DNA of 64,000 nucleotides from Auanema rhodensis (GCA_964057225.1 OZ059900.1:14818001-14882000), one strand, 5' to 3'. Positions 1-64,000 are shown, counted from the stretch's first letter. Numbers and translations: made by a program. The notes: a model not told the origin generated them from the letters alone.

Positions 1-32
1 ATTAAATAACGATGAATCAGAACAAAAACATT

Positions 33-104
33 CTCCCCGTCCGGGAATTGAACCCGGGTCTCGCATGTGACAGACGCGGATTCTCACCACTATACTACCG
101 AGGA
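33..104 (-). tRNA. trnD-GTC: tRNA-Asp(GTC), variant allele (T23A, C66A)
   Basis: 72-nt cloverleaf with anticodon loop CT-GTC-AC; A12:A23 and G7:A66 mismatches. Confidence 0.8.
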
Positions 105-463
105 TTGAATTTGCACTTAGAAACTTTCATTAAGAGTGTGAGTTTGAATTAAAGTAGAAAAATGAAACACTTTCTCTAACATATCTTGATTTATGGCCTA
201 CTTTACTCAAAGAGCTAATTGAAGTTTGGTGTTAAAATGAACAATTGATTAACGCTGACGTTCCGTTTTTTTTTCATAGTAATTGAGATAGAACATTTAA
301 ATTAAATGGAAATGTTTAAAAATTTAGAAAAAAAACACAAGCTAAAATCACTTTTGAAAAAACAGAAAGTTTAAAACAACCTTTTTTCTAATAATTATCT
401 TTTTTATCCGACTTTTGGAAAAAAACAAAAATAGCATAACATTCAATAACGATGAACCAGAAC

Positions 464-468
464 AAAAA
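464..468 (-). terminator. Pol III oligo-dT terminator (T5), one per monomer
   Basis: Minus strand reads ...GGGGAG-AATG-TTTTT-GTTC, so the T run starts 4 nt after the discriminator. Confidence 0.85.
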
Positions 469-484
469 CATTCTCCCCGGCCGG

Positions 485-493
485 GAATTGAAC
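485..493 (-). promoter_or_regulatory. Pol III type-2 B box (GTTCAATTC), TFIIIC site, one per monomer
   Basis: tRNA positions 53-61 match GTTCRANYC. Confidence 0.9.
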
Positions 494-526
494 CCGGGTC
501 TCGCATGTGACAGACGCGGATACTCA

Positions 527-537
527 CCACTATACTA
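527..537 (-). promoter_or_regulatory. Pol III type-2 A box (TAGTATAGTGG), one per monomer
   Basis: tRNA positions 8-19 fit the TRGYNNANNGG-type A-box consensus. Confidence 0.85.
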
Positions 538-544
538 CCGAGGA

Positions 545-585
545 TTGAATTTGCACTTAGAAACTTTCATTAAGAGTGTGAGTTT
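545..585 (-). promoter_or_regulatory. Conserved 5' flank; putative TFIIIB/initiation region (TTAAT at about -29..-25, CAA at -3..-1)
   Basis: Minus strand ...CACTCTTAATGAAAGTTTCTAAGTGCAAATTCAA|TCCTCGG, near-invariant across monomers. Function is inferred from position only. Confidence 0.45.
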
Positions 586-911
586 GAATTAAAGTAGAAA
601 AATGAAACACTGTCTCTAACATATCTTGATTTATGGCCTACTTTACTCAAAGAGCTAATTGAAGTTTGGTGTTACAATTAACGATTGATTAACGCTGACG
701 TTTCAATTTTTTTCATCGTAATTAAGATAGAACACTTAAATAAAATAGAAATGTTTGAAAATTTAAAAAAAAATCACAAGCTCAAACCACTTTTGAAAAA
801 GCAGAAAGTTTAAAACAATCTTTTTTCTAATAATTATCGTCTTTATCCGATTTTTTGAAGAAAACAAAAATAGCATAACATTCAATAACGATGAATCAGA
901 ACAAAAACATT

Positions 912-983
912 CTCCCCGGCCGGGAATTGAACCCGGGTCTCGCATGTGACAGACGCGGATACTCACCACTATACTACCGAGGA
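912..983 (-). tRNA. trnD-GTC: tRNA-Asp(GTC), consensus copy
   Basis: Identical to 473..544. Confidence 0.95.
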
Positions 984-1350
984 TTGAATTTGCACTTAGA
1001 AACTTTCATTAAGAGTGTGAGTTTGAATTAAAGTAGAAAAATGAAACACTTTCTCTAACATATCTTGATTTATGGCCTACTTTACTCAAAGAGCTAATTG
1101 AAGTTTGGTGTTAAAATGAACAATTGATTAACGCTGACGTTCCGTTTTTTTTTCATAGTAATTGAGATAGAACATTTAAATTAAATGGAAATGTTTAAAA
1201 ATTTAGAAAATATCACAAGCTAAAATCACTTTTGAAAAAACAGAAAGTTTAAAACAACCTTTTTTCTAATAATTATCTTTTTTATCCGACTTTTGGAAAA
1301 AAACAAAAATAGCATAACATTCAATAACGATGAATCAGAACAAAAACATT

Positions 1351-1422
1351 CTCCCCGGCCGGGAATTGAACCCGGGTCTCGCATGTGACAGACGCGGATA
1401 CTCACCACTATACTACCGAGGA
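1351..1422 (-). tRNA. trnD-GTC: tRNA-Asp(GTC), consensus copy
   Basis: Identical to 473..544. Confidence 0.95.
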
Positions 1423-1788
1423 TTGAATTTGCACTTAGAAACTTTCATTAAGAGTGTGAGTTTGAATTAAAGTAGAAAAATGAAACACTGTCTCTAACAT
1501 ATCTTGATTTATGGCCTACTTTACTCAAAGAGCTAATTGAAGTTTGGTGTTACAATTAACGATTGATAAACGCTGACGTATCAATTTTTTTCATCGTAAT
1601 TAAGATAGAACACTTAAATTAAATAGAAATGTTTGAAAATTTAAAAAAAATCACAAGCTCAAACCACTTTTGAAAAAGCAGAAAGTTTAAAACAATCATT
1701 TTTCTAATAATTATCGTCTTTATCCGACTTTTTGAAGAAAACAAAAATAGCATAACATTCAATAACGATGAATCAGAACAAAAACATT

Positions 1789-1860
1789 CTCCCCGTCCGG
1801 GAATTGAACCCGGGTCTCGCATGTGACAGACGCGGATTCTCACCACTATACTACCGTGGA
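1789..1860 (-). pseudogene. tRNA-Asp triple-mismatch allele (T4A, T23A, C66A); representative of ~22 copies
   Basis: Plus strand ccccgtcc / ggattctc / ccgtgga gives A4:G69, G7:A66 and A12:A23 mismatches. A/B boxes and anticodon are intact. Confidence 0.6.
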
Positions 1861-11508: not shown

Positions 11509-11947
11509 TTGAATTTGCACTTAGAAACTTTCATTAAGAGTGTGAGTTTGAATTAAAGTAGAAAAATGAAACACTGTCTCTAACATATCTTGATTTATGG
11601 CCTACTTTACTCAAAGAGCTAATTGAAGTTTGGTGTTACAATTAACGATTGATTAACGCTGACGTTTCAATTTTTTTCATCGTAATTAAGATAGAACACT
11701 TAAATAAAATAGAAATGTTTGAAAATTTAAAAAAAAATCACAAGCTCAAACCACTTTTGAAAAAGCAGAAAGTTTAAAACAACCCTTTTTCTAATAATTA
11801 TCTTTTTCATCCGACTTTTGGAAAAAAACAAAAATAGCATAACATTCAATAACGATGAATCAGAACAAAAACATTCTCCCCGGCCGGGAATTTAACCCGG
11901 GTCTCGCATGTGACAGACGCGGATTCTCACCACTATACTACCGTGGA

Positions 11948-12270
11948 TTGAATTCGCACTTAGAAACTTTCATTAAGAGTGTGAGTTTGAATTATAGTAG
12001 AAAAATGAAACACTGTCTCTAACATATCTTGATTTATGGCCTACTTTACTCAAAGAGCTAATTGGATTTGGTGTTAGAATGAACAATTGATTAACGCTAA
12101 CGTTTTAATTTTTTTCATCGTAATTGAGATAGAACATTAAAAATAAATGGAAATGTTTAACAATTTAGAAAAAAACGATGAATCCGAACAAAAACATTCT
12201 CCCCGGCCGGGAATTGAACCCGGGTCTCGCATGTGACAGACGCGGATACTCACCACTATACTACCGAGGA
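11948..12270 (-). repeat. 323-bp monomer with ~115-bp spacer deletion; consensus tRNA at 12199..12270
   Basis: Junction ttagaaaaaaac|gatgaatccg at ~12176. Confidence 0.9.
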
Positions 12271-14028: not shown

Positions 14029-16220
14029 TTGAATTTGCACTTAGAAACTTTCATTAAGAGTGTGAGTTTGAATTAAAGTAGAAAAATGAAACACTGTTTC
14101 TAACATATCTTGATTTATGGCCTACTTTACTCAAAGAGCTAATTGAAGTTTGGTGTTAGAATGAACAATTGATTAACGCTGACGTTTCAATTTTTTTCAT
14201 CGTAATTGAGATAGAACATTTAGAATAAATGGAAATGTTTAACAATTTAGAAAAAAATCACAAGCTCAAATCACTTTTGAAAAAACAGAAAGTTTAAAAC
14301 AACCCTTTTTCTAATAATTATCTTTTTCATCCGACTTTTGGAAAAAAACAAAAATAGCATAACATTCAATAACGATGAATCAGAACAAAAACATTCTCCC
14401 CGTCCGGGAATTGAACCCGGGTCTCGCATGTGACAGACGCAGATACTCACCACTATCCTACCGAGGATTGAATTTGCACTTAGAAACTTTCATTAAGAGT
14501 GTGAGTTTGAAATATAGTAGAAAAATGAAACACTGTCTCTAACATATATTGATTTTTGGCCTACTTTACTCAAAGAGCTAATTGAAGTTTGGTGTTACAA
14601 TTAACGATTGATTAACGCTGACGTTTTAATTTTTTTCATCGTAATTAAGATAGAACACTTAAATAAAATAGAAATGTTTAACAATTTAGAAAAAAATCAC
14701 AAGCTCAAACCACTTTTGAAAAAGCAGAAAGTTTAAAACAACCCTTTTTCTAATAATTATCTTTTTCATCCGACTTTTGGAAAAAAACAAAAATAGCATA
14801 ACATTCAATAACGATGAATCAGAACAAAAACATTCTCCCCGTCCGGGAATTGAACCCGGGTCTCGCATGTGACAGACGCGGATTCTCACCACTATACTAC
14901 CGTGGATTGAATTCGCACTTAGAAACTTTCATTAAGAGTGTGAGTTTGAATTATAGTAGAAAAATGAAACACTGTCTCTAACATATCTTGATTTATGGCC
15001 TACTTTACTCAAAGAGCTAATTGGATTTGGTGTTAGAATGAACAATTGATTAACGCTGACGTTTTAATTTTTTTCATCGTAATTAAGATAGAACACTTAA
15101 ATAAAATAGAAATGTTTAACAATTTAGAAAAAAATCACAAGCTCAAACCACTTTTGAAAAAGCAGAAAGTTTAAAACAACCCTTTTTCTAATAATTATCT
15201 TTTTCATCCGACTTTTGGAAAAAAACAAAAATAGCATAACATTAAATAACGATGAATCAGAACAAAAACATTCTCCCCGTCCGGGAATTGAACCCGGGTC
15301 TCGCATGTGACAGACGCAGATACTCACCACTATCCTACCGAGGATTGAATTTGCACTTAGAAACTTTCATTAAGAGTGTGAAATTGAAATATAGTAGAAA
15401 AATGAAACACTGTCTCTAACATATATTGATTTTTGGCCTACTTTACTCAAAGAGCTAATTGAAGTTTGGTGTTACAATTAACGATTGATTAACGCTGATG
15501 TTTCAATTTTTTTCATCGTAATTGAGATAGAACATTCAAATTAAATGGAAATGTTTAAAATTTAGTAAATATCACAAGCTCAAATTACTTTTGAAAAAAC
15601 AGAAAGTTTAAAACAACCTTTTTTCTAATGATTATCTTTTTTATCCGACTTTCGGAAGAAAACAAAAATAGCATAACATTCAATAACGATGAATCAGAAC
15701 AAAAACATTCTCCCCGGCCGGGAATTGAACCCGGGTCTCGCATGTGACAGACGCGGATACTCACCACTATACTACCGAGGATTGAATTTGCACTTAGAAA
15801 CTTTCATTAAGAGTGTGAGTTTGAATTATAGTAGAAAAATGAAACACTGTTTCTAACATATCTTGATTTATGGCCTACTTTACTCAAAGAGCTAATTGAA
15901 GTTTGGTGTTAGAATGAACAATTGATTAACGCTGACGTTTCAATTTTTTTCATCGTAATTGAGATAGAACATTTAGAATAAATGGAAATGTTTAACAATT
16001 TAGAAAAAAAACACAAGCTCAAATCACTTTTGAAAAAACAGAAAGTTTAAAACAACCCTTTTTCTAATAGTTATCTTTTTCATCCGACTTTTGGAAAAAA
16101 ACAAAAATAGCATAACATTAAATAACGATGAATCAGAACAAAAACATTCTCCCCGTCCGGGAATTGAACCCGGGTCTCGCATGTGACAGACGCGGATTCT
16201 CACCACTATACTACCGTGGA

Positions 16221-16543
16221 TTGAATTCGCACTTAGAAACTTTCATTAAGAGTGTGAGTTTGAATTATAGTAGAAAAATGAAACACTGTCTCTAACATAT
16301 CTTGATTTATGGCCTACTTTACTCAAAGAGCTAATTGGATTTGGTGTTAGAATGAACAATTGATTAACGCTGACGTTTTAATTTTTTTCATCGTAATTGA
16401 GATAGAACATTTAAAATAAATGGAAATGTTTAACAATTTAGAAAAAAACGATGAATCCGAACAAAAACATTCTCCCCGGCCGGGAATTGAACCCGGGTCT
16501 CGCATGTGACAGACGCGGATACTCACCACTATACTACCGAGGA
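16221..16543 (-). repeat. Second 323-bp monomer with the same deletion junction; consensus tRNA at 16472..16543
   Basis: Junction ttagaaaaaaac|gatgaatccg at ~16449. Confidence 0.9.
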
Positions 16544-19500: not shown

Positions 19501-21734
19501 AGCATAACATTAAATAACGATGAATCAGAACAAAAACATTCTCCCCGTCCGGGAATTGAACCCGGGTCTCGCATGTGACAGACGCGGATTCTCACCACTA
19601 TACTACCGTGGATTGAATTCGCACTTAGAAACTTTCATTAAGAGTGTGAGTTTGAATTATAGTAGAAAAATGAAACACTGTCTCTAACATATCTTGATTT
19701 ATGGCCTACTTTACTCAAAGAGCTAATTGGATTTGGTGTTAGAATGAACAATTGATTAACGCTGACGTTTTAATTTTTTTCATCGTAATTAAGATAGAAC
19801 ACTTAAATAAAATAGAAATGTTTGAAAATTTAAAAAAAAATCACAAGCTCAAACCACTTTTGAAAAAGCAGAAAGTTTAAAACAATCTTTTTTCTAATAA
19901 TTATCGTCTTCATCCGACTTTTTGAAGAAAACAAAAATAGCATAACATTCAATAACGATGAATCCGAACAAAAACATTCTCCCCGGCCGGGAATTGAACC
20001 CGGGTCTCGCATGTGACAGACGCGGATACTCACCACTATACTACCGAGGATTGAATTTGCACTTAGAAACTTTCATTAAGAGTGTGAGTTTGAATTAAAG
20101 TAGAAAAATGAAACACTTTCTCTAACATATCTTGATTTATGGCCTACTTTACTCAAAGAGCTAATTGAAGTTTGGTGTTAAAATGAACAATTGATTAACG
20201 CTGACGTTCCGTTTTTTTTTCATAGTAATTGAGATAGAACATTTAAATTAAATGGAAATGTTTAAAAATTTAGAAAAAAAACACAAGCTCAAATCACTTT
20301 TGAAAAAACAGAAAGTTTAAAACAACCTTTTTTCTAATAATTATCTTTTTTATCCGACTTTTGGAAAAAAACAAAAATAGCATAACATTCAATAACGATG
20401 AATCAGAACAAAAACATTCTCCCCGGCCGGGAATTGAACCCGGGTCTCGCATGTGACAGACGCGGATACTCACCACTATACTACCGAGGATTGAATTTGC
20501 ACTTAGAAACTTTCATTAAGAGTGTGAGTTTGAATTAAAGTACAAAAATGAAACACTGTCTCTAACATATCTTGATTTATGGCCTACTTTACTCAAAGAG
20601 CTAATTGAAGTTTGGTGTTACAATTAACGATTGATAAACGCTGACGTATCAATTTTTTTCATCGTAATTAAGATAGAACACTTAAATTAAATAGAAATGT
20701 TTGAAAATTTAAAAAAAAATCACAAGCTCAAACCACTTTTGAAAAAGCAGAAAGTTTAAAACAATCTTTTTTCTAATAATTATCGTCTTTATCCGACTTT
20801 TTGAAGAAAACAAAAATAGCATAACATTCAATAACGATGAATCAGAACAAAAACATTCTCCCCGTCCGGGAATTGAACCCGGGTCTCGCATGTGACAGAC
20901 GCGGATTCTCACCACTATACTACCGTGGATTGAATTCGCACTTAGAAACTTTCATTAAGAGTGTGAGTTTGAATTAAAGTAGAAAAATGAAACACTGTCT
21001 CTAACATATCTTGATTTATGGCCTACTTTACTCAAAGAGCTAATTGAAGTTTGGTGTTAGAATGAACAATTGATTAACGCTGACGTTTCAATTTTTTTCA
21101 TCGTAATTGAGATAGAACATTTAGAATAAAAGGAAATGTTTAACAATTTAGAAAAAAAACACAAGCTCAAATCACTTTTGAAAAAACAGAAAGTTTAAAA
21201 CAACCCTTTTTCTAATAATTATCTTTTTCATCCGACTTTTGGAAAAAAACAAAAATAGCATAACATTAAATAACGATGAATCAGAACAAAAACATTCTCC
21301 CCGTCCGGGAATTGAACCCGGGTCTCGCATGTGACAGACGCGGATTCTCACCACTATACTACCGTGGATTGAATTCGCACTTAGAAACTTTCATTAAGAG
21401 TGTGAGTTTGAATTATAGTAGAAAAATGAAACACTGTCTCTAACATATCTTGATTTATGGCCTACTTTACTCAAAGAGCTAATTGGATTTGGTGTTAGAA
21501 TGAACAATTGATTAACGCTGACGTTTTAATTTTTTTCATCGTAATTAAGATAGAACACTTAAATAAAATAGAAATGTTTGAAAATTTAAAAAAAAATCAC
21601 AAGCTCAAACCACTTTTGAAAAAGCAGAAAATTTAAAACAATCTTTTTTCTAATAATTATCGTCTTCATCCGACTTTTTGAAGAAAACAAAAATAGCATA
21701 ACATTCAATAACGATGAATCAGAACAAAAACATT

Positions 21735-21806
21735 CTCCCCGTCCGGGAATTGAACAAGGGTCTCGCATGTGACAGACGCGGATTCTCACCACTATACTAC
21801 CGTGGA
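21735..21806 (-). pseudogene. Degenerate tRNA-Asp (triple allele plus G51T, G52T)
   Basis: Plus strand gaacaaggg; the same allele is at 29639..29710. Confidence 0.75.
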
Positions 21807-24800
21807 TTGTATTCGCACTTAGAAACTTTCATTAAGAGTGTGAGTTTGAATTATAGTAGAAAAATGAAACACTGTCTCTAACATATCTTGATTTATGGCC
21901 TACTTTACTCAAAGAGCTAATTGAAGTTTGGTGTTACAATTAACGATTGATAAACGCTGACGTATCAATTTTTTTCATCGTAATTAAGATAGAACACTTA
22001 AATTAAATAGAAATGTTTGAAAATTTAAAAAAAAATCACAAGCTCAAACCACTTTTGAAAAAGCAGAAAGTTTAAAACAATCTTTTTTCTAATAATTATC
22101 GTCTTTATCCGACTTTTTGAAGAAAACAAAAATAGCATAACATTCAATAACGATGAATCAGAACAAAAACATTCTCCCCGTCCGGGAATTGAACCCGGGT
22201 CTCGCATGTGACAGACGCGGATTCTCACCACTATACTACCGTGGATTGAATTCGCACTTAGAAACTTTCATTAAGAGTGTGAGTTTGAATTAAAGTAGAA
22301 AAATGAAACACTGTCTCTAACATATCTTGATTTATGGCCTACTTTACTCAAAGAGCTAATTGAAGTTTGGTGTTAGAATGAACAATTGATTAACGCTGAC
22401 GTTTCAATTTTTTTCATCGTAATTGAGATAGAACATTTAGAATAAATGGAAATGTTTAACAATTTAGAAAAAAAACACAAGCTCAAATCACTTTTGAAAA
22501 AACAGAAAGTTTAAAACAACCCTTTTTCTAATAATTATCTTTTTCATCCGACTTTTGGAAAAAAACAAAAATAGCATAACATTAAATAACGATGAATCAG
22601 AACAAAAACATTCTCCCCGTCCGGGAATTGAACCCGGGTCTCGCATGTGACAGACGCGGATTCTCACCACTATACTACCGTGGATTGAATTCGCACTTAG
22701 AAACTTTCATTAAGAGTGTGAGTTTGAATTATAGTAGAAAAATGAAACACTGTCTCTAACATATCTTGATTTATGGCCTACTTTACTCAAAGAGCTAATT
22801 GGATTTGGTGTTAGAATGAACAATTGATTAACGCTGACGTTTTAATTTTTTTCATCGTAATTAAGATAGAACACTTAAATAAAATAGAAATGTTTGAAAA
22901 TTTAAAAAAAAATCACAAGCTCAAACCACTTTTGAAAAAGCAGAAAATTTAAAACAATCTTTTTTCTAATAATTATCGTCTTCATCCGACTTTTTGAAGA
23001 AAACAAAAATAGCATAACATTCAATAACGATGAATCCGAACAAAAACATTCTCCCCGGCCGGGAATTGAACCCGGGTCTCGCATGTGACAGACGCGGATA
23101 CTCACCACTATACTACCGAGGATTGAATTTGCACTTAGAAACTTTCATTAAGAGTGTGAGTTTGAATTAAAGTAGAAAAATGAAACACTTTCTCTAACAT
23201 ATCTTGATTTATGGCCTACTTTACTCAAAGAGCTAATTGAAGTTTGGTGTTAAAATGAACAATTGATTAACGCTGACGTTCCGTTTTTTTTTCATAGTAA
23301 TTGAGATAGAACATTTAAATTAAATGGAAATGTTTAAAATTTTAGAAAAAAAACACAAGCTAAAATCACTTTTGAAAAAACAGAAAGTTTAAAACAACCT
23401 TTTTTCTAATAATTATCTTTTTTATCCGACTTTTGGAAAAAAACAAAAATAGCATAACATTCAATAACGATGAATCAGAACAAAAACATTCTCCCCGGCC
23501 GGGAATTGAACCCGGGTCTCGCATGTGACAGACGCGGATACTCACCACTATACTACCGAGGATTGAATTTGCACTTAGAAACTTTCATTAAGAGTGTGAG
23601 TTTGAATTAAAGTAGAAAAATGAAACACTTTCTCTAACATATCTTGATTTATGGCCTACTTTACTCAAAGAGCTAATTGAAGTTTGGTGTTAAAATGAAC
23701 AATTGATTAACGCTGACGTTCCGTTTTTTTTTCATAGTAATTGAGATAGAACATTTAAATTAAATGGAAATGTTTGAAAATTTAAAAAAAAATCACAAGC
23801 TCAAACCACTTTTGAAAAAGCAGAAAGTTTAAAACAATCTTTTTTCTAATAATTATCGTCTTTATCCGACTTTTTGAAGAAAACAAAAATAGCATAACAT
23901 TCAATAACGATGAATCAGAACAAAAACATTCTCCCCGTCCGGGAATTGAACCCGGGTCTCGCATGTGACAGACGCGGATTCTCACCACTATACTACCGTG
24001 GATTGAATTCGCACTTAGAAACTTTCATTAAGAGTGTGAGTTTGAATTAAAGTAGAAAAATGAAACACTGTCTCTAACATATCTTGATTTATGGCCTACT
24101 TTACTCAAAGAGCTAATTGAAGTTTGGTGTTAGAATGAACAATTGATTAACGCTGACGTTTCAATTTTTTTCATCGTAATTGAGATAGAACATTTAGAAT
24201 AAATGGAAATGTTTAACAATTTAGAAAAAAAACACAAGCTCAAATCACTTTTGAAAAAACAGAAAGTTTAAAACAACCCTTTTTCTAATAATTATCTTTT
24301 TCATCCGACTTTTGGAAAAAAACAAAAATAGCATAACATTAAATAACGATGAATCAGAACAAAAACATTCTCCCCGTCCGGGAATTGAACCCGGGTCTCG
24401 CATGTGACAGACGCGGATTCTCACCACTATACTACCGTGGATTGAATTCGCACTTAGAAACTTTCATTAAGAGTGTGAGTTTGAATTATAGTAGAAAAAT
24501 GAAACACTGTCTCTAACATATCTTGATTTATGGCCTACTTTACTCAAAGAGCTAATTGGATTTGGTGTTAGAATGAACAATTGATTAACGCTGACGTTTT
24601 AATTTTTTTCATCGTAATTAAGATAGAACACTTAAATAAAATAGAAATGTTTGAAAATTTAAAAAAAAATCACAAGCTCAAACCACTTTTGAAAAAGCAG
24701 AAAATTTAAAACAATCTTTTTTCTAATAATTATCGTCTTCATCCGACTTTTTGAAGAAAACAAAAATAGCATAACATTCAATAACGATGAATCCGAACAA

Positions 24801-27800
24801 AAACATTCTCCCCGGCCGGGAATTGAACCCGGGTCTCGCATGTGACAGACGCGGATACTCACCACTATACTACCGAGGATTGAATTTGCACTTAGAAACT
24901 TTCATTAAGAGTGTGAGTTTGAATTAAAGTAGAAAAATGAAACACTTTCTCTAACATATCTTGATTTATGGCCTACTTTACTCAAAGAGCTAATTGAAGT
25001 TTGGTGTTAAAATGAACAATTGATTAACGCTGACGTTCCGTTTTTTTTTCATAGTAATTGAGATAGAACATTTAAATTAAATGGAAATGTTTAAAATTTT
25101 AGAAAAAAAACACAAGCTAAAATCACTTTTGAAAAAACAGAAAGTTTAAAACAACCTTTTTTCTAATAATTATCTTTTTTATCCGACTTTTGGAAAAAAA
25201 CAAAAATAGCATAACATTCAATAACGATGAATCAGAACAAAAACATTCTCCCCGGCCGGGAATTGAACCCGGGTCTCGCATGTGACAGACGCGGATACTC
25301 ACCACTATACTACCGAGGATTGAATTTGCACTTAGAAACTTTCATTAAGAGTGTGAGTTTGAATTAAAGTAGAAAAATGAAACACTTTCTCTAACATATC
25401 TTGATTTATGGCCTACTTTACTCAAAGAGCTAATTGAAGTTTGGTGTTAAAATGAACAATTGATTAACGCTGACGTTCCGTTTTTTTTTCATAGTAATTG
25501 AGATAGAACATTTAAATTAAATGGAAATGTTTAAAAATTTAGAAAAAAAACACAAGCTAAAATCACTTTTGAAAAAACAGAAAGTTTAAAACAACCTTTT
25601 TTCTAATAATTATCTTTTTTATCCGACTTTTGGAAAAAAACAAAAATAGCATAACATTCAATAACGATGAACCAGAACAAAAACATTCTCCCCGGCCGGG
25701 AATTGAACCCGGGTCTCGCATGTGACAGACGCGGATACTCACCACTATACTACCGAGGATTGAATTTGCACTTAGAAACTTTCATTAAGAGTGTGAGTTT
25801 GAATTAAAGTAGAAAAATAAAACACTGTCTCTAACATATCTTGTTTTATGGCCTACTTTACTCAAAGAGCTAATTGAAGTTTGGTGTTACAATTAACGAT
25901 TGATAAACGCTGACGTATCAATTTTTTTCATCGTAATTAAGATAGAACACTTAAATTAAATAGAAATGTTCGAAAATTTAAAAAAAAATCACAAGCTCAA
26001 ACCACTTTTGAAAAAGCAGAAAGTTTAAAACAATCTTTTTTCTAATAATTATCGTCTTTATCCGACTTTTTGAAGAAAACAAAAATAGCATAACATTCAA
26101 TAACGATGAATCAGAACAAAAACATTCTCCCCGTCCGGGAATTGAACCCGGGTCTCGCATGTGACAGACGCGGATTCTCACCACTATACTACCGTGGATT
26201 GAATTCGCACTTAGAAACTTTCATTAAGAGTGTGAGTTTGAATTAAAGTAGAAAAATGAAACACTGTCTCTAACATATCTTGATTTATGGCCTACTTTAC
26301 TCAAAGAGCTAATTGAAGTTTGGTGTTAGAATGAACAATTGATTAACGCTGACGTTTCAATTTTTTTCATCGTAATTGAGATAGAACATTTAGAATAAAT
26401 GGAAATGTTTAACAATTTAGAAAAAAAACACAAGCTCAAATCACTTTTGAAAAAACAGAAAGTTTAAAACAACCCTTTTTCTAATAATTATCTTTTTCAT
26501 CCGACTTTTGGAAAAAAACAAAAATAGCATAACATTAAATAACGATGAATCAGAACAAAAACATTCTCCCCGTCCGGGAATTGAACCCGGGTCTCGCATG
26601 TGACAGACGCGGATTCTCACCACTATACTACCGTGGATTGAATTCGCACTTAGAAACTTTCATTAAGAGTGTGAGTTTGAATTATAGTAGAAAAATGAAA
26701 CACTGTCTCTAACATATCTTGATTTATGGCCTACTTTACTCAAAGAGCTAATTGGATTTGGTGTTAGAATGAACAATTGATTAACGCTGACGTTTTAATT
26801 TTTTTCATCGTAATTAAGATAGAACACTTAAATAAAATAGAAATGTTTGAAAATTTAAAAAAAAATCACAAGCTCAAACCACTTTTGAAAAAGCAGAAAA
26901 TTTAAAACAATCTTTTTTCTAATAATTATCGTCTTCATCCGACTTTTTGAAGAAAACAAAAATAGCATAACATTCAATAACGATGAATCCGAACAAAAAC
27001 ATTCTCCCCGGCCGGGAATTGAACCCGGGTCTCGCATGTGACAGACGCGGATACTCACCACTATACTACCGAGGATTGAATTTGCACTTAGAAACTTTCA
27101 TTAAGAGTGTGAGTTTGAATTAAAGTAGAAAAATGAAACACTTTCTCTAACATATCTTGATTTATGGCCTACTTTACTCAAAGAGCTAATTGAAGTTTGG
27201 TGTTAAAATGAACAATTGATTAACGCTGACGTTCCGTTTTTTTTTCATAGTAATTGAGATAGAACATTTAAATTAAATGGAAATGTTTAAAATTTTAGAA
27301 AAAAAACACAAGCTAAAATCACTTTTGAAAAAACAGAAAGTTTAAAACAACCTTTTTTCTAATAATTATCTTTTTTATCCGACTTTTGGAAAAAAACAAA
27401 AATAGCATAACATTCAATAACGATGAATCAGAACAAAAACATTCTCCCCGGCCGGGAATTGAACCCGGGTCTCGCATGTGACAGACGCGGATACTCACCA
27501 CTATACTACCGAGGATTGAATTTGCACTTAGAAACTTTCATTAAGAGTGTGAGTTTGAATTAAAGTAGAAAAATGAAACACTTTCTCTAACATATCTTGA
27601 TTTATGGCCTACTTTACTCAAAGAGCTAATTGAAGTTTGGTGTTAAAATGAACAATTGATTAACGCTGACGTTCCGTTTTTTTTTCATAGTAATTGAGAT
27701 AGAACATTTAAATTAAATGGAAATGTTTAAAAATTTAGAAAAAAAACACAAGCTAAAATCACTTTTGAAAAAACAGAAAGTTTAAAACAACCTTTTTTCT

Positions 27801-54200: not shown

Positions 54201-57200
54201 AAAAACATTCTCCCCGGCCGGGAATTGAACCCGGGTCTCGCATGTGACAGACGCGGATACTCACCACTATACTACCGAGGATTGAATTTGCACTTAGAAA
54301 CTTTCATTAAGAGTGTGAGTTTGAATTATAGTAGAAAAATGAAACACTGTCTCTAACATATCTTGATTTATGGCCTACTTTACTCAAAGAGCTAATTGAA
54401 GTTTGGTGTTAGAATAAACAATTGATTAAGGCTGACGTTTCAATTTTTTTCATCGTAATTGAGATAGAACATTTAAAATAAATGGAAATGTTTAACAATT
54501 TAGAAAAAAAACACAAGCTCAAATCACTTTTGAAAAAACAGAAAGTTTAAAACAACCTTTTTTCTAACAATTATCTCTTTAATTCGACTTTTGGAAGAAA
54601 ACAAAAATAGCATAACATTCAATAACGATGAATCAGAACAAAAACATTCTCCCCGGCCGGGAATTGAACCCGGGTCTCGCATGTGACAGACGCGGATACT
54701 CACCACTATACTACCGAGGATTGAATTTGCACTTAGAAACTTTCATTAAGAGTGTGAGTTTGAATTAAAGTAGTAAAATGAAACACTGTCTCTAACATAT
54801 ATTGATTTTTGGCCTACTTTACTCAAAGAGCTAATTGAAGTTTGGTGTTACAATTAACGATTGATTAACGCTGATGTTTCAATTTTTTTCATCGTAATTG
54901 AGATAGAACACTTAAATTAAATATAAATGTTTGAAAATTTGAAAAAAAACACAAGCTCAAATCACTTTTGAAAAAATAGAAAGTTTAAAACAACCTTTTT
55001 TCTAATAATTATCTTTTTTATCCGACTTTCGGAAGAAAAAAAAAATAGCTTAACATTCAATAACGATGAATCAGAACAAAAACATTCTCCCCGGCCGGGA
55101 ATTGAACCCGGGTCTCGCATGTGACAGACGCGGATTCTCACCACTATACTACCGAGGATTGAATTTGCACTTAGAAACTTTCATTAAGAGTGTGAGTTTG
55201 AAATATAGTAGAAAAATGAAACACTGTCTCTAACATATATTGATTTTTGGCCTACTTTACTCAAAGAGCTAATTGAAGTTTGGTGTTACAATTAACGATT
55301 GATTAACGCTGATGTTTCAATTTTTTTCATCGTAATTGAGATAGAACATTTAAATTAAATGGAAATGTTTAACAATTTAGAAAAAAAACACAAGCTCAAA
55401 TCACTTTTGAAAAAATAGAAAGTTTAAAACAACCTTTTTTCTAATAATTATCGTCTTTATCCGACTTTTTGAAGAAAACAAAAATAGCATAACATTCAAT
55501 AACGATGAATCCAAACAAAAACATTCTCCCCGGCCGGGAATTGAACCCGGGTCTCGCATGTGACAGACGCGGATTCTCACCACTATACTACCGAGGATTG
55601 AATTTGCACTTAGAAACTTTCATTAAGAGTGTGAGTTTGAATTAAAGTAGAAAAATGAAACACTGTCTTTAACATATATTGATTTTTGGCCTACTTTACT
55701 CAAAGAGCTAATTGAAGTTTGGTGTTACAATTAACGATTGATTAACGCTGATGTTTCAATTTTTTTCATCGTAATTAAGATAGAACACTTAAATTAAATA
55801 GAAATGTTTGAAAATTTGAAAAAAAATCACAAGCTCAAACCACTTTTGAAAAAGCAGAAAGTTTAAAACAATCTTTTTTCTAATAATTATCGTCTTTATC
55901 CGACTTTTTGAAGAAAACAAAAATAGCATAACATTCAATAACGATGAATCCGAACAAAAACATTCTCCCCGGCCGGGAATTGAACCCGGGTCTCGCATGT
56001 GACAGACGCGGATACTCACCACTATACTACCGAGGATTGAATTTGCACTTAGAAACTTTCATTAAGAGTGTGAGTTTGAAATATAGTAGAAAAATGAAAC
56101 ACTGTCTCTAACATATATTGATTTTTGGCCTACTTTACTCAAAGAGCTAATTGAAGTTTGGTGTTACAATTAACGATTGATTAACGCTGATGTTTCAATT
56201 TTTTTCATCGTAATTGAGATAGAACATTCAAATTAAATGGAAATGTTTAAAATTTAGAAAATATCACAAGCTCAAATTACTTTTGAAAAAACAGAAAGTT
56301 TAAAACAACCTTTTTTCTAATGATTATCTTTTTTATCCGACTTTCGGAAGAAAACAAAAATAGCATAACATTCAATAACGATGAATCAGAACAAAAACAT
56401 TCTCCCCGGCCGGGAATTGAACCCGGGTCTCGCATGTGACAGACGCGGATACTCACCACTATACTACCGAGGATTGAATTTGCACTTAGAAACTTTCATT
56501 AAGAGTGTGAGTTTGAATTATAGTAGAAAAATGAAACACTGTCTCTAACATATCTTGATTTATGGCCTACTTTACTCAAAGAGCTAATTGAAGTTTGGTG
56601 TTAGAATAAACAATTGATTAAGGCTGACGTTTCAATTTTTTTCATCGTAATTGAGATAGAACATTTAAAATAAATGGAAATGTTTAACAATTTAGAAAAA
56701 AAACACAAGCTCAAATCACTTTTGAAAAAACAGAAAGTTTAAAACAACCTTTTTTCTAACAATTATCTCTTTAATTCGACTTTTGGAAGAAAACAAAAAT
56801 AGCATAACATTCAATAACGATGAATCAGAACAAAAACATTCTCCCCGGCCGGGAATTGAACCCGGGTCTCGCATGTGACAGACGCGGATACTCACCACTA
56901 TACTACCGAGGATTGAATTTGCACTTAGAAACTTTCATTAAGAGTGTGAGTTTGAATTATAGTAGAAAAATGAAACACTGTCTCTAACATATCTTGATTT
57001 TTGGCCTACTTTACTCAAAGAGCTAATTGAAGTTTGGTGTTAGAATAAACAATTGATTAAGGCTGACGTTTCAATTTTTTTCATCGTAATTGAGATAGAA
57101 CATTTAAAATAAATGGAAATGTTTAACAATTTAGAAAAAAAACACAAGCTCAAATCACTTTTGAAAAAACAGAAAGTTTAAAACAACCTTTTTTCTAACA

Positions 57201-59106
57201 ATTATCTCTTTAATTCGACTTTTGGAAGAAAACAAAAATAGCATAACATTCAATAACGATGAATCAGAACAAAAACATTCTCCCCGGCCGGGAATTGAAC
57301 CCGGGTCTCGCATGTGACAGACGCGGATACTCACCACTATACTACCGAGGATTGAATTTGCACTTAGAAACTTTCATTAAGAGTGTGAGTTTGAATTAAA
57401 GTAGAAAAATGAAACACTGTCTCTAACATATATTGATTTTTGGCCTACTTTACTCAAAGAGCTAATTGAAGTTTGGTGTTACAATTAACGATTGATTAAC
57501 GCTGATGTTTCAATTTTTTTCATCGTAATTGAGATAGAACACTTAAATTAAATAGAAATGTTTGAAAATTTGAAAAAAAACACAAGCTCAAATCACTTTT
57601 GAAAAAACAGAAAGTTTAAAACAACCCTTTTTCTAATAACTATCTTTTTCATCCGACTTTTGGAAAAAAACAAAAATAGCATAACATTAAATAACGATGA
57701 ATCAGAACAAAAACATTCTCCCCGTCCGGGAATTGAACCCGGGTCTCGCATGTGACAGACGCGGATTCTCACCACTATACTACCGAGGATTGAATTTGCA
57801 CTTAGAAACTTTCATTAAGAGTGTGAGTTTGAAATATAGTAGAAAAATGAAACACTGTCTCTAACATATATTGATTTTTGGCCTACTTTACTCAAAGAGC
57901 TAATTGAAGTTTGGTGTTACAATTAACGATTGATTAACGCTGATGTTTCAATTTTTTTCATCGTAATTGATATAGAACATTTAAATTAAATGGAAATGTT
58001 TAACAATTTAGAAAAAAAACACAAGCTCAAATCACTTTTGAAAAAATAGAAAGTTTAAAACAACCTTTTTTCTAATAATTATCGTCTTTATCCGACTTTT
58101 TGAAGAAAACAAAAATAGCATAACATTCAATAACGATGAATCCGAACAAAAACATTCTCCCCGGCCGGGAATTGAACCCGGGTCTCGCATGTGACAGACG
58201 CGGATTCTCACCACTATACTACCGAGGATTGAATTTGCACTTAGAAACTTTCATTAAGAGTGTGAGTTTGAATTAAAGTAGAAAAATGAAACACTGTCTT
58301 TAACATATATTGATTTTTGGCCTACTTTACTCAAAGAGCTAATTGAAGTTTGGTGTTACAATTAACGATTGATTAACGCTGATGTTTCAATTTTTTTCAT
58401 CGTAATTAAGATAGAACACTTTAATTAAATAGAAATGTTTGAAAATTTGAAAAAAAATCACAAGCTCAAACCACTCTTGAAAAAGCAGAAAGTTTAAAAC
58501 AATCTTTTTTCTAATAATTATCGTCTTTATCCGACTTTTTGAAGAAAACAAAAATAGCATAACATTCAATAACGATGAATCCGAACAAAAACATTCTCCC
58601 CGGCCGGGAATTGAACCCGGGTCTCGCATGTGACAGACGCGGATACTCACCACTATACTACCGAGGATTGAATTTGCACTTAGAAACTTTCATTAAGAGT
58701 GTGAGTTTGAATTAAAGTAGAAAAATGAAACACTGTCTCTAACATATCTTGATTTATGGCCTACTTTACTCAAAGAGCTAATTGAAGTTTGGTGTTAGAA
58801 TGAACAATTGATTAACGCTGACGTTTCAATTTTTTTCATCGTAATTGAGATAGAACATTTAAAATAAATGGAAATGTTTAACAATTTAGAAAAAAAACAC
58901 AAGCTCAAATCACTTTTGAAAAAACAGAAAGTTTAAAACAACCCTTTTTCTAATAATTATCTTTTTCATCCGACTTTTGGAAAAAAACAAAATTAGCATA
59001 ACATTAAATAACGATGAATCAGAACAAAAACATTCTCCCCGTCCGGGAATTGAACCCGGGTCTCGCATGTGACAGACGCAGATACTCACCACTATCCTAC
59101 CGAGGA

Positions 59107-59412
59107 TTGAATTTGCACTTAGAAACTTTCATTAAGAGTGTGAGTTTGAAATATAGTAGAAAAATGAAACACTGTCTCTAACATGTATTGATTTATGGCC
59201 TACTTTACTCAAAGAGCACTTTTGAAAAAATAGAAAGTTTAAAACAACCTTTTTTCTAATAATTATCGTCTTTATCCGACTTTTTGAAGAAAACAAAAAT
59301 AGCATAACATTCAATAACGATGAATCAGAACAAAAACATTCTCCCCGGCCGGGAATTGAACCCGGGTCTCGCATGTGACAGACGCGGATACTCACCACTA
59401 TACTACCGAGGA
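59107..59412 (-). repeat. 306-bp monomer with ~133-bp spacer deletion; consensus tRNA at 59341..59412
   Basis: Junction ctcaaagagc|acttttgaaaa at ~59217. Confidence 0.9.
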
Positions 59413-61533
59413 TTGAATTTGCACTTAGAAACTTTCATTAAGAGTGTGAGTTTGAATTAAAGTAGAAAAATGAAACACTGTCTTTAACATATATTGATTT
59501 TTGGCCTACTTTACTCAAAGAGCTAATTGAAGTTTGGTGTTAGAATGAACAATTGATTAACGCTGACGTTTCAATTTTTTTCATCGTAATTGAGATAGAA
59601 CATTTAAAATAAATGGAAATGTTTAACAATTTAGAAAAAAAACACAAGCTCAAATCACTTTTGAAAAAACAGAAAGTTTAAAACAACCCTTTTTCTAATA
59701 ATTATCTTTTTCATCCGACTTTTGGAAAAAAACAAAATTAGCATAACATTAAATAACGATGAATCAGAACAAAAACATTCTCCCCGTCCGGGAATTGAAC
59801 CCGGGTCTCGCATGTGACAGACGCAGATACTCACCACTATCCTACCGAGGATTGAATTTGCACTTAGAAACTTTCATTAAGAGTGTGAGTTTGAAATATA
59901 GTAGAAAAATGAAACACTGTCTCTAACATGTATTGATTTATGGCCTACTTTACTCAAAGAGCTAATTGAAGTTTGGTGTTAAAATGAACAAATGATTAAC
60001 GCTGACGTTCCATTTTTTTTCATCGCAATTGAGATAGAATACTTAAATTAAATGGAAATGTTTAAAATTTAGAAAATATCACAAGCTCAAATTACTTTTG
60101 AAAAAACAGAAAGTTTAAAACAACCTTTTTTCTAATGATTATCTTTTTTATCCGACTTTCGGAAGAAAACAAAAATAGCATAACATTCAATAACGATGAA
60201 TCAGAACAAAAACATTCTCCCCGGCCGGGAATTTAACCCGGGTCTCGCATGTGACAGACGCGGATACTCACCACTATACTACCGAGGATTGAATTTGCAC
60301 TTAGAAACTTTCATTAAGAGTGTGAGTTTGAATTATAGTAGAAAAATGAAACACTGTTTCTAACATATCTTGATTTATGGCCTACTTTACTCAAAGAGCT
60401 AATTGAAGTTTGGTGTTAGAATGAACAATTGATTAACGCTGACGTTTTAATTTTTTTCATCGTAATTGAGATAGAACATTTAAAATAAATGGAAATGTTT
60501 AACAATTTAGAAAAAAAACACAAGCTCAAATCACTTTTGAACAAACAGAAAGTTTAAAACAGCCCTTTTTCTAATAATTATCTTTTTCATCCGATTTTTG
60601 GAAAAAAACAAAAATAGCATAACATTAAATAACGATGAATCAGAACAAAAAAAATTCTCCCCGTCCGGGAATTGAACCCGGGTCTCGCATGTGACAGACG
60701 CGGATTCTCACCACTATACTACCGAGGATTGAATTCGCACTTAGAAACTTTCATTAAGAGTGTGAGTTTGAATTATAGTAGAAAAATGAAACACTGTCTC
60801 TAACATATCTTGATTTATGGCCTACTTTACTCAAAGAGCTAATTGGATTTGGTGTTAGAATGAACAATTGATTAACGCTGACGTTTCAATTTTTTTCATC
60901 GTAATTGAGATAGAACATTTAAATTAAATGGAAATGTTTAACAATTTAGAAAAAAAACACAAGCTCAAATCACTTTTGAAAAAGCAGAAAGTTTAAAACA
61001 ATCTTTTTTCTAATAATTATCGTCTTTATCCGACTTTTTGAAGAAAACAAAAATAGCATAACATTCAATAACGATGAATCAGAACAAAAACATTCTCCCC
61101 GGCCGGGAATTGAACCCGGGTCTCGCATGTGACAGACGCAGATACTCACCACTATCCTACCGAGGATTGAATTTGCACTTAGAAACTTTCATTAAGAGTG
61201 TGAGTTTGAATTAAAGTAGAAAAATGAAACACTGTCTCTAACATATCTTGATTTATGGCCTACTTTACTCAAAGAGCTAATTGAAGTTTGGTGTTAGAAT
61301 GAACAATTGATTAACGCTGACGTTTCAATTTTTTTCATCGTAATTGAGATAGAACATTTAAAATAAATGGAAATGTTTAACAATTTAGAAAAAAAACACA
61401 AGCTCAAATCACTTTTGAAAAAACAGAAAGTTTAAAACAACCCTTTTTCTAATAATTATCTTTTTCATCCGACTTTTGGAGAAAAACAAAATTAGCATAA
61501 CATTAAATAACGATGAATCAGAACAAAAACATT

Positions 61534-61605
61534 CTCCCCGTCCGGGAATTCAACCCGGGTCTCGCATGTGACAGACGCAGATACTCACCACTATCCTACC
61601 GAGGA
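61534..61605 (-). pseudogene. tRNA-Asp with C56G B-box mutation (plus T11G, C27T, C66A)
   Basis: Plus strand gggaattcaaccc (c at 61551) makes the B box GTTGAATTC. Confidence 0.8.
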
Positions 61606-63723
61606 TTGAATTTGCACTTAGAAACTTTCATTAAGAGTGTGAGTTTGAAATATAGTAGAAAAATGAAACACTGTCTCTAACATGTATTGATTTATGGCCT
61701 ACTTTACTCAAAGAGCTAATTGAAGTTTGGTGTTAAAATGAACAAATGATTAACGCTGACGTTCCATTTTTTTTCATCGCAATTGAGATAGAATACTTAA
61801 ATTAAATGGAAATGTTTAAAATTTAGAAAATATCACAAGCTCAAATTACTTTTGAAAAAACAGAAAGTTTAAAACAACCTTTTTTCTAATGATTATCTTT
61901 TTTATCCGACTTTCGGAAGAAAACAAAAATAGCATAACATTCAATAACGATGAATCAGAACAAAAACATTCTCCCCGGCCGGGAATTTAACCCGGGTCTC
62001 GCATGTGACAGACGCGGATACTCACCACTATACTACCGAGGATTGAATTTGCACTTAGAAACTTTCATTAAGAGTGTGAGTTTGAATTATAGTAGAAAAA
62101 TGAAACACTGTTTCTAACATATCTTGATTTATGGCCTACTTTACTCAAAGAGCTAATTGAAGTTTGGTGTTAGAATGAACAATTGATTAACGCTGACGTT
62201 TTAATTTTTTTCATCGTAATTGAGATAGAACATTTAAAATAAATGGAAATGTTTAACAATTTAGAAAAAAAACACAAGCTCAAATCACTTTTGAAAAAAC
62301 AGAAAGTTTAAAACAGCCCTTTTTCTAATAATTATCTTTTTCATCCGATTTTTGGAAAAAAACAAAAATAGCATAACATTAAATAACGATGAATCAGAAC
62401 AAAAAAAATTCTCCCCGTCCGGGAATTGAACCCGGGTCTCGCATGTGACAGACGCGGATTCTCACCACTATACTACCGAGGATTGAATTCGCACTTAGAA
62501 ACTTTCATTAAGAGTGTGAGTTTGAATTATAGTAGAAAAATGAAACACTGTCTCTAACATATCTTGATTTATGGCCTACTTTACTCAAAGAGCTAATTGG
62601 ATTTGGTGTTAGAATGAACAATTGATTAACGCTGACGTTTCAATTTTTTTCATCGTAATTGAGATAGAACATTTAAATTAAATGGAAATGTTTAACAATT
62701 TAGAAAAAAAACACAAGCTCAAATCACTTTTGAAAAAATAGAAAGTTTAAAACAACCTTTTTTCTAATAATTATCTTTTTTATCCGACTTTCGGAAGAAA
62801 ACAAAAATAGCTTAACATTCAATAACGATGAATCAGAACAAAAACATTCTCCCCGGCCGGGAATTGAACCCGGGTCTCGCATGTGACAGACGCAGATACT
62901 CACCACTATCCTACCGAGGATTGAATTTGCACTTAGAAACTTTCATTAAGAGTGTGAGTTTGAATTAAAGTAGAAAAATGAAACACTGTCTCTAACATAT
63001 ATTGATTTATGGCCTACTTTACTCAAAGAGCTAATTGAAGTTTGGTGTTAAAATGAACAACTGATTAACGCTGACGTTCCATTTTTTTTCATCGTAATTG
63101 AGATAGAACATTTAAATTAAATGGAAATGTTTAAAAATTTAGAAAAAATCACAAGCTCAAATCACTTTTGAAAAAACAGAAAGTTTAAAACAACCTTTTT
63201 TCTAATAATTATCTTTTTAATTCGACTTTTGGAAGAAAACAAAATAGCATAACATTCAATAACGATGAATCAGAACAAAAACATTCTCCCCGGCCGGGAA
63301 TTTAACCCGGGTCTCGCATGTGACAGACGCGGATACTCACCACTATACTACCGAGGATTGAATTTGCACTTAGAAACTTTCATTAAGAGTGTGAGTTTGA
63401 AATATAGTAGAAAAATGAAACACAGTCTCTAACATATATTGATTTATGGCCTACTTTACTCAAAGAGCTAATTGAAGTTTGGTGTTAAAATGAACAATTG
63501 ATTAACGCTGACGTTCCATTTTTTTTCATCGTAATTGAGATAGAACATTTAAATTAAATGGAAATGTTTAAAAATTTAGAAAAAATCACAAGCTGAAATC
63601 ACTTTTGAAAAAACAGAAAGTTTAAAACAACCTTTTTTCTAATAATTATCTCTTTAATTCGACTTTTGGAAGAAAACAAAAATAGCATAACATTCAATAA
63701 CGATGAATCAGAACAAAAACATT

Positions 63724-63795
63724 CTCCCCGGCCGGGAATGGAACCCGGGTCTCGCATGTGACAGACGCGGATACTCACCACTATACTACCGAGGA
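63724..63795 (-). tRNA. trnD-GTC: Last tRNA-Asp(GTC) in the window, A57C variant
   Basis: Plus strand gggaatggaaccc; T loop reads TTCCATT. Confidence 0.65.
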
Positions 63796-64000
63796 TTGAA
63801 TTTGCACTTAGAAACTTTCATTAAGAGTGTGAGTTTGAATTAAAGTAGAAAAATGAAACACTGTCTCTAACATATATTGATTTTTGGCCTACTTTACTCG
63901 AAGAGCTAATTGAAGTTTGGTGTTACAATTAACGATTGATTAACGCTGATGTTTCAATTTTTTTCATCGTAATTAAGATAGAACACTTAAATTAAATAGA

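Follow-up and report, generated by a model that had tools for sequence, protein, structure and literature searches.

The stretch analysed here, 64,000 bp of the Auanema rhodense assembly (GCA_964057225.1, OZ059900.1:14818001-14882000; hereafter the window, lying on the sequence designated C8), is occupied by one tandem array of tRNA-Asp(GTC) genes. ARAGORN identifies 147 genes over the whole window, all of them on the minus strand. Their spacing is most often 439 bp (73 cases), followed by 438 bp (30), 440 bp (24) and 437 bp (16), and the regular period is broken three times by shorter units, two of 323 bp and one of 306 bp. TRF likewise reports a single 439-bp array over bases 1-63,997, with the 306-bp variant as the only other period, so that the original prediction of about 147 co-oriented cassettes at a spacing of about 439 bp is confirmed. 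The G+C content is flat across the window (31.4-32.0%), and the sequence contains no N.

At gathering scores, RF00005 (tRNA) is the sole Rfam family on either strand of the window, and 144 of the 147 copies reach 29 bits or more, above the gathering score of that family. The anticodon GTC occupies positions 34-36 in every window copy, while one copy outside the window carries ATC. The predicted promoter boxes and T5 terminator are also present: a run of five T follows each of the 147 copies, and the A and B boxes are unaltered in 127 and 126 of them, respectively. The statement that 64 kb hold no other gene or microsatellite stands as well, since the window lacks ORFs of at least 90 aa, TRF detected no microsatellite in the spacer, and a permissive Rfam search for other RNA genes in the unit, which contains one tRNA, gave sub-threshold chance matches only. 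As in a satellite, one monomer is repeated head to tail for 64 kb without interruption or other content.

Table 1. Features of the tRNA-Asp array, in window coordinates
Feature	Position	Strand	Remarks
Tandem array	1-64,000	-	147 units, consensus 438 bp, one tRNA-Asp(GTC) each (ARAGORN, TRF, Rfam)
Example canonical tRNA-Asp(GTC)	473-544	-	72 nt, 55.4 bits against RF00005; 56 identical copies in the window
A-box region of the example gene	527-537	-	tRNA positions 8-18
B-box region of the example gene	483-493	-	tRNA positions 52-62; C56 to A in one subfamily
Five-T run	464-468	-	Pol III terminator-like; begins 5 nt past the 3' end of the example tRNA
Low-diversity block upstream of the tRNA	545-662	-	118 bp, pi about 0.02
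Variable mid-spacer	664-863	-	Unit positions 121-320, pi 0.05-0.13; common variants per site double the number elsewhere in the unit
Spacer of the first 323-bp short unit	11,947-12,199	-	Deletion of about 116 bp
Spacer of the second 323-bp short unit	16,220-16,472	-	
Spacer of the sole 306-bp short unit	59,106-59,341	-	Deletion of about 133 bp
Sixteen colinear units	20,929-27,515	-	Colinear with C8:14,782,786-14,789,371; mean 6.5 differences per unit
Second colinear block	32,345-37,614		Matches C8:14,794,199-14,799,467

The window is a small part of the locus. A spacer 30-mer, searched with up to two mismatches, counts about 1,519 units genome-wide (416 forward and 1,103 reverse), and all of the matches listed fall on C8 between 14,408,438 and 15,010,648. 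We describe the domain as a run of about 1,500 units, each 438-439 bp long, that extends over about 0.7 Mb, from C8:14.41 Mb to past 15.01 Mb. On this scale, the predicted lack of an array end, a transposon or an inversion, which is correct for the window, no longer applies: an LTR retroelement breaks the array 667 bp past the window end, more of them lie within the array both left and right of the window, and oppositely oriented array blocks are found on its left. In the units outside the window, the retroelement insertions have a hot spot at -29 to -73 from the tRNA, within the low-diversity upstream block, a hint that the genes are bound by Pol III factors.

Homogenisation is uneven across the domain. 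Units share a mean pairwise identity of 93.7% within the window and of 98.4% within the right-hand domain, a stretch about 23 kb right of the window that is young, near-uniform and mostly intact; adjacent units of the window are 95.5% identical. The window is an older, more diverged and decayed part of the domain. Since the deletion of about 116 bp occurs in two short units, it has been copied by local duplication, and the two colinear blocks of Table 1 jointly mark an old segmental duplication within the array at an offset of 56 kb. Uneven homogenisation of domains, local multi-unit haplotype patterns and segmental duplication are all satellite-like.

Many of the tRNA copies are structurally damaged. 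The canonical tRNA accounts for 38% of the window copies and for 53 of the 144 full-length window units; 58 of these 144 have all stems paired and the invariant bases kept, whereas 86 (about 60%) have a stem mismatch and/or an altered invariant base. The Rfam scores show the same spread, with 57 window copies at 55.4 bits and 54 of 147 at or below 45 bits or sub-threshold. Across 479 full-length units, 295 are intact and 58% canonical, terminators being present in all, and the canonical fraction of full-length units rises to 85% in the young right-hand domain. The damage has spread: variants with three stem mismatches or with C56A are amplified to tens of copies, and damaged haplotypes recur in local multi-unit patterns. 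Haplotypes peculiar to the array include one with A4, A23 and A65, numbered along the 72-nt gene, and the C56A haplotype.

Singletons are as dense in the tRNA as elsewhere (0.29 versus 0.25 per site, p = 0.46). Common variants, however, are rarer within the tRNA plus near flanks than in the mid-spacer (0.16 versus 0.35 per site, p = 8e-6). Selection acting over the long term to keep the genes working could be the cause, but conversion events centred on the gene can produce the same pattern. As the tRNA takes up new mutations no less densely than the spacer does, the array behaves as a tRNA-seeded satellite. The original prediction had offered three readings, namely a 5S-like dosage locus, a structural chromosome element and a tRNA-seeded satellite, and the last of them fits best in view of the 60% damaged copies, the undepleted new mutations in the tRNA, the amplified damaged variants and the transposon invasion.

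The prediction had assumed an ordinary eukaryotic chromosome, an assumption that has to be abandoned. The germline assembly of A. rhodense amounts to 180.9 Mb, 61% of the germline genome is discarded, elimination takes away the repeat-rich ends of the X, and the X satellite XT-2 is eliminated according to FISH (10.64898/2026.08.27.747507). We identify C8 as the X chromosome because the published FISH probes match it exactly in thousands of copies: XT-2 (X-eliminated) has 25,032 exact matches, the first at C8:15,016,471, XR-1 (X-retained) has 2,494 from C8:7,210,884, and XT-1 has 9,872 from C8:75,052. Pkinase and RRM matches on C8 are confined to 5.91-13.98 Mb. The window thus falls between the last gene markers (13.98 Mb) and the eliminated XT-2 (from 15.016 Mb), and from this position alone we consider the array probably germline-restricted DNA. 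With 61% of the germline genome discarded in this nematode, and an eliminated satellite directly beside the array, an excess of copies acquires a different meaning. The same 25 nt of the tRNA core also occur at dispersed sites and in arrays of 727-bp period on C3, amid gene matches; judging from this shared core, the retained genome has tRNA-Asp copies of its own.

Guesses at a break-site motif did not locate the right-hand X break site. TTAGGC-N15-GCCTAA had one chance match and TAGGC-N15-GCCTA had 23 matches against 16 in the control, while a perfect 29-mer palindrome constructed from a recurring match had none. A degenerate break-site consensus was absent from C8 and found only an autosomal telomere-like minisatellite with a period of 29-35 bp.

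The novelty that the original prediction had attached to the array does not survive either: that tRNA arrays lie in eliminated A. rhodense DNA is already known from a preprint of August 2026, which counts 19,554 tRNA loci, classes only 215 tRNA loci as pseudogenes, and lists arrays of 5S rRNA, several tRNA loci and U2 among the germline-restricted tandem repeats (10.64898/2026.08.27.747507). Those arrays belong to the same genome and the same phenomenon as the one described here. The preprint text gives no anatomy of the X array, to which the present analysis adds the unit structure, the approximately 1,500 copies, the ages of the domains, the decay and the retroelement hot spot; its 215 pseudogene loci genome-wide also contrast with structural damage in 60% of the window copies. 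A literature search for tRNA arrays in the eliminated DNA of other species returned nothing relevant besides this preprint.

We consider it likely that the X array was amplified from one tRNA gene, is germline-restricted, and consists of copies under relaxed selection. The array would occupy the inner margin of the right-hand X repeat block that is discarded by programmed DNA elimination; with somatic loss from the 12-cell stage, its DNA would be left in the germline and the earliest embryo only. One tRNA gene with its flanks would have been amplified via unequal exchange and segmental duplication. Since the DNA would be confined to the germline and early embryo, and the retained genome would have its own tRNA-Asp genes, there would be little or no selection on single copies, and we infer relaxed selection on this basis. 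The copies could then accumulate stem-breaking and B-box mutations, damaged variants could be amplified in turn, and LTR retroelements could insert just upstream of the tRNA genes. In the germline, Pol III transcription of intact copies may persist.

An unlikely alternative is that this transcription is what the locus is for: in the germline and earliest embryo, Pol III would transcribe the intact copies to serve the translation load of oogenesis, and elimination would end the somatic supply, by analogy with the Xenopus oocyte-type 5S genes. The latter are tandem Pol III genes, present in thousands and active only in the germline; they stay in somatic DNA, silenced by chromatin, and differ in sequence from the somatic type. 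The Auanema array departs from this model in that its DNA is probably discarded and its canonical tRNA shares the 25-nt core with dispersed copies; no germline- versus somatic-type sequence variant was found, the canonical array tRNA being identical to the C3 dispersed copies over the 25 nt compared. The canonical fractions given above (58% of 479 full-length units, 85% in the young domain) agree with a dosage locus, as do the recurrence in tandem of a T-run after every copy and of mostly intact A and B boxes, the rarity of old variants in the tRNA and near flanks relative to the mid-spacer, the insertions at 29-73 bp upstream, as expected with TFIIIB/TFIIIC bound there, and the count of 19,554 tRNA loci (10.64898/2026.08.27.747507). 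Against it, the tRNA is not depleted of new mutations, three-stem-mismatch and C56A variants stand at tens of copies, and gene-centred conversion can also explain why fewer variants are carried near the tRNA. Moreover, the sole RNA-labelled contig, of depth 3, spans the tRNA together with 130 nt of its 5' flank, a form that does not fit a Pol III transcript. In a bolder version, which we regard as rather doubtful, the X array and the tRNA arrays of other isotypes would together form a germline-only Pol III battery for oogenesis and the first cleavages, discarded at the 12-cell stage, and the insertions at -29 to -73 would be the footprint that Pol III factors leave when bound in germ cells.

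The remaining explanations concern the fate of the array DNA, its role in the chromosome and the assembly itself. If the X break site lay between the array and XT-2, where about 6 kb separate the two, the array would stay in the soma beside the new telomere as an ordinary oversized tRNA-Asp locus or a boundary element; both somatic X fragments do keep large repeat blocks (10.64898/2026.08.27.747507). This arrangement seems improbable, since the array runs directly into XT-2, gene markers are absent right of 13.98 Mb, and several hundred minus-strand units are unplaced by the unit counts, some of which may sit past 15.01 Mb, e.g. in the 57-kb XT-2 gap at 15.044-15.101 Mb. A structural role, in which X-specific, TFIIIC-bound tDNA would serve, in germline chromosomes, pairing, the unusual segregation of the Auanema X, condensin/cohesin loading or the marking of DNA for elimination, is in our view quite improbable. 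The unit copies are all on the X among the matches listed, the B box is intact in 86% of window copies, and X-specific repeats have been speculated to shape X inheritance (10.64898/2026.08.27.747507); the array of about 0.7 Mb is nevertheless small next to XT-2 (at least 8.5 Mb), and B-box decay (C56A) is tolerated.

That the assembler over-expanded a short array is hardly credible. Adjacent units are 4-6% apart, with distinct patterns, unique deletions and transposon junctions that HiFi reads can place, and most long reads map uniquely within the repeat blocks (10.64898/2026.08.27.747507). Window variants also recur in the contigs of another DNA run: over a 5.6-kb test stretch, chosen as the most unique part, contigs cover 30 of 30 bins and 683 of 1,074 are at least 99% alike, although these are assembled contigs whose depth is uninformative.

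Several known systems can be set beside the germline-restricted satellite proposed here. In Entamoeba, nearly all tRNA genes are arrayed, with up to five tRNAs per unit and STRs in the spacers, and account for an appreciable part of the genome (PMC2652664). Long tandem tRNA arrays are common to both; in contrast, the Auanema unit holds one tRNA, its spacer lacks a microsatellite, and dispersed copies exist as well. The Ser-Tyr-Tyr cluster of Arabidopsis chromosome 1 comprises 27 three-gene units, is heterochromatic and mostly silent, evolves by local duplication, and is reactivated in a tissue after silencing without being physically removed (PMC2886086, PMC12308677). Tandem tRNA genes and local duplication are shared with it, but Auanema has about 1,500 one-gene units. 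The eliminated satellites of nematodes (Ascaris, Oscheius, and Auanema XT-1/XT-2) are tandem repeats of a few hundred bp at chromosome ends, unevenly homogenised and lost from the soma, as the X array would be; unlike them, the Auanema monomer described here includes an entire Pol III gene, from its promoter boxes to the terminator.

If the array is a satellite under relaxed selection only, it would be a worked example of a housekeeping gene seeding a satellite in DNA that the body does not use, and the 19,554 tRNA loci would overstate the number of working genes. If the germline makes use of its intact copies, elimination would gain a function, namely the removal of a supply of germline-only Pol III products; for protein-coding genes, such a function of elimination is doubted by the authors of the preprint (10.64898/2026.08.27.747507). 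Should the tRNA arrays indeed act as a germline-only battery, gene dosage would be set by DNA elimination rather than by chromatin. In either case, the mutant tRNAs of the array are natural tags for its transcription.

The window holds a single 439-bp array running from base 1 to base 63,997 (Tandem Repeats Finder), in which ARAGORN detects 147 tRNA-Asp(GTC) genes, every one on the minus strand. The gene spacing is 437-440 bp, with the exception of three shortened units (323, 323 and 306 bp). At the curated thresholds tRNA is the sole Rfam family in the window, 144 of the 147 copies exceeding the gathering score, and relaxing the Rfam thresholds over 3 kb yielded only chance hits besides tRNA. 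No open reading frame of at least 90 amino acids was found in the window, which contains no N and is flat in base composition. A run of five T begins 5 nt beyond the tRNA 3' end in all 147 copies, and the A-box and B-box regions are unaltered in 127 and 126 of them, respectively. The array described in the original prediction, with its gene number, isoacceptor, one orientation, single 439-bp period and T-runs, is therefore borne out exactly.

Reading a further 200 kb around the window (264 kb in all, C8:14,738,001-15,002,000) raises the number of tRNA-Asp genes to 509, and the window is the longest unbroken array piece among them. A 30-mer of the spacer, allowing at most 2 mismatches, has 416 forward and 1,103 reverse matches genome-wide. 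Since its count tracks that of the genes over the 264 kb (507 vs 509), the domain is estimated at ~1,500 units, equivalent to some 0.67 Mb of repeat. Left of 14.745 Mb the array is a mosaic of both orientations. At one head-to-head junction, two opposite blocks both break at unit position 377 and flank an insert of 1 kb that contains a 197-codon ORF, an arrangement resembling an inversion junction at the site of an insertion. One copy outside the window carries the anticodon ATC instead of GTC.

The assembly searched comprises 180,911,798 bases in 112 contigs; the published germline assembly of Auanema rhodense is 180.9 Mb, and 61% of the germline genome is lost by programmed DNA elimination starting at the 12-cell stage (10.64898/2026.08.27.747507). 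Three of the four FISH oligos printed in the Methods of that preprint (10.64898/2026.08.27.747507) were searched as exact patterns across the genome, and their matches establish the species as A. rhodense and show that contig C8 is the X chromosome. The published layout is reproduced on C8: the left end carries the satellite XT-1, the middle the retained genes and XR-1, and the right XT-2. The eliminated status of XT-1 is the naming of the preprint, whose text gives no FISH result for this probe, while XT-2 is absent from somatic nuclei by FISH (10.64898/2026.08.27.747507).

The array domain begins at 14.41 Mb and reaches within ~6 kb of XT-2. From this position on C8, we consider it likely that the window is germline-restricted DNA. 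Alternatively, a break site might lie in the few kb separating the array from XT-2. A genome search with guessed break-site motif patterns did not find the break site. A telomere-like motif occurs on autosomes, consisting of TAGGCAGTGGATA and then GCCTAAGCCTA-like letters, often in tandem copies 29-35 bp apart; it differs from the sought break-site palindrome and was rejected as such.

Locations of satellite probes, array features and related sequences in the germline assembly
Feature	Location	Details
XT-1 satellite probe	C8:75,052 (first place)	named X-terminal eliminated in the preprint; 9,872 exact matches; period 347 bp
Pkinase and RRM matches	C8:5.91-13.98 Mb	on C8, confined to this interval
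XR-1 satellite probe	C8:7,210,884 (first place)	X-retained by FISH; 2,494 exact matches; period 348 bp
Spacer 30-mer	C8:14,408,438 to 15,010,648	places among the matches listed, all on C8
Seven interruptions	C8:14,744,190-14,950,184	outside the window
Head-to-head junction	C8:14,744,190-14,745,844	
Gypsy-type element	C8:14,756,331-14,759,066	fusion-glycoprotein domain, gB-like or Monjiviricetes-type
Copy with anticodon ATC	C8:14,808,947-14,809,018	
Pao/BEL element	C8:14,895,123-14,903,747	single 2,875-codon open frame
Right domain of the array	C8:14.905-15.002 Mb	
598-bp units	C8:14,943,365-14,958,985	five units
XT-2 satellite probe	C8:15,016,471 (first place)	X-eliminated by FISH; 25,032 exact matches; period 342 bp
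727-bp-period tRNA-Asp copies	C3:15,861,985-16,120,163	several blocks
Telomere-like motif	C1:10,852,760	
Telomere-like motif	C3:15,668,594-15,668,676	
Telomere-like motif	C3:18,702,429, 19,028,762, 19,030,656, 19,053,182	
Telomere-like motif	C5:8,677,170-8,677,264	
Telomere-like motif	C6:15,352,732-15,352,855	

Most window copies have decayed. Among the 144 full-length units, 53 are canonical, 5 are changed but intact and 86 are structurally damaged, having a stem mismatch and/or a changed invariant base. The corresponding numbers are 277 (58%), 18 and 184 of 479 over all 264 kb, and 163 (85%), 6 and 22 of 191 in the right domain. Judged from the sequence, the tRNA changes seem mostly harmful on their face: a haplotype seen 33 times breaks three stem pairs (U4 to A, U23 to A, C65 to A), one pair is lost through G67/G68 to A and a D-stem pair through U11 to G, and in 24 units C56 to A eliminates an invariant base of the B box. 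Unit identity is 98.4-99.2% in the right domain versus about 95.5% for neighbouring units in the window, which belongs to an old portion of the array. Along the array, short patterns of damaged haplotypes appear repeatedly, and two window blocks are colinear with blocks 56 kb leftward, averaging 5.9-6.5 differences in each unit. Overall, the array looks like the product of local amplification in repeated rounds, its copies decaying in the intervals.

Four of the five foreign-DNA gaps in the 264 kb are LTR retroelements, one Pao/BEL and three gypsy-type; the first after the window starts 667 bp beyond its end. The open frame of the Pao/BEL element, which looks young and intact, contains Peptidase_A17, DUF1759, DUF5641 and integrase zinc domains. 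In the tabulated gypsy-type element, the fusion-glycoprotein open frame sits between gag and pol, and an element resembling it was observed 2.8 kb past the end of the window. When seven independent interruptions were mapped onto the unit, five fell at positions 366-410, which places them 29-73 bp upstream of the tRNA that follows (chance of 5/7 within 45 of 438 positions, 2e-4), and four within positions 366-383; target duplications (5 bp or 6 bp) accompany two of the seven. The 598-bp units share the same 155-bp insert at positions 370-374 and are scattered over 15 kb, implying one insertion copied by array amplification. The clustering suggests that LTR-element integration upstream of the array tRNAs is directed by Pol III, and it argues indirectly for occupancy of the array genes by Pol III factors in germ cells.

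Alignment of 483 units (consensus 438 bp) gives a diversity pi of 0.023 in the tRNA part and about 0.02 in both the 48 bp downstream and the 118 bp upstream, versus 0.05-0.13 in the middle 200 bp of the spacer. Old, common variants account entirely for this difference: the tRNA with its near flanks carries 0.16 per site and the mid spacer 0.35 (p = 8e-6). New mutations, each confined to one unit, reach much the same density inside the tRNA (0.29 per site) and outside it (0.25; p = 0.46). Weak long-term selection for working units could explain why old variants are scarcer close to the gene; gene conversion centred on the tRNA could explain it equally well. A putative role of the intact copies in germline tRNA supply finds its best argument in the upstream insertion clustering, which hints at Pol III factors on the genes; we regard this role as unlikely, and it is directly testable because mutant tRNAs tag the array. 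Most likely, and with good probability, the array is a tRNA-seeded satellite that would expand under relaxed selection in germline-only DNA.

In a 5.6-kb test stretch, contigs from a DNA run of the best-matching organism cover 30/30 bins, for the most part with at least 99% identity, so that the sequence variants are not peculiar to this assembly. A run under another label (X7, organism C) contains spacer pieces with 0-3 differences from window positions 55,321-58,797. Their word depth is 13-62 (mostly 13-18) versus 180-250 for its tRNA-bearing contigs, and its tRNA-Asp contigs extend into unrelated flanks, which hints that this organism is a close relative, or a strain, in which the unit is present in few copies. 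In the run of a third organism the tRNA part alone matches, at about 88% identity. An RNA-labelled run yields a single 199-nt contig of depth 3, which spans the tRNA together with 130 nt of its 5' flank; its shape is not that of a Pol III transcript, and it may be DNA carry-over.

The array is real and striking, yet already known. The original prediction stated that a prior description would remove novelty, and the preprint describes the arrays of this genome, counting 19,554 tRNA loci and placing 5S rRNA, several tRNA loci and U2 arrays among the germline-restricted tandem repeats (10.64898/2026.08.27.747507). Its 215 tRNA pseudogenes called genome-wide (10.64898/2026.08.27.747507) contrast with the damaged majority of full-length units in the window alone. 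New here are the domain beside XT-2 and how its parts differ in age, the decayed state of most window copies and the upstream insertion hot spot. The 25-nt tRNA core of the array also occurs at dispersed single sites and in 727-bp-period arrays on C3, amid protein-gene matches. If retained in the soma, these C3 arrays would supply somatic tRNA-Asp.
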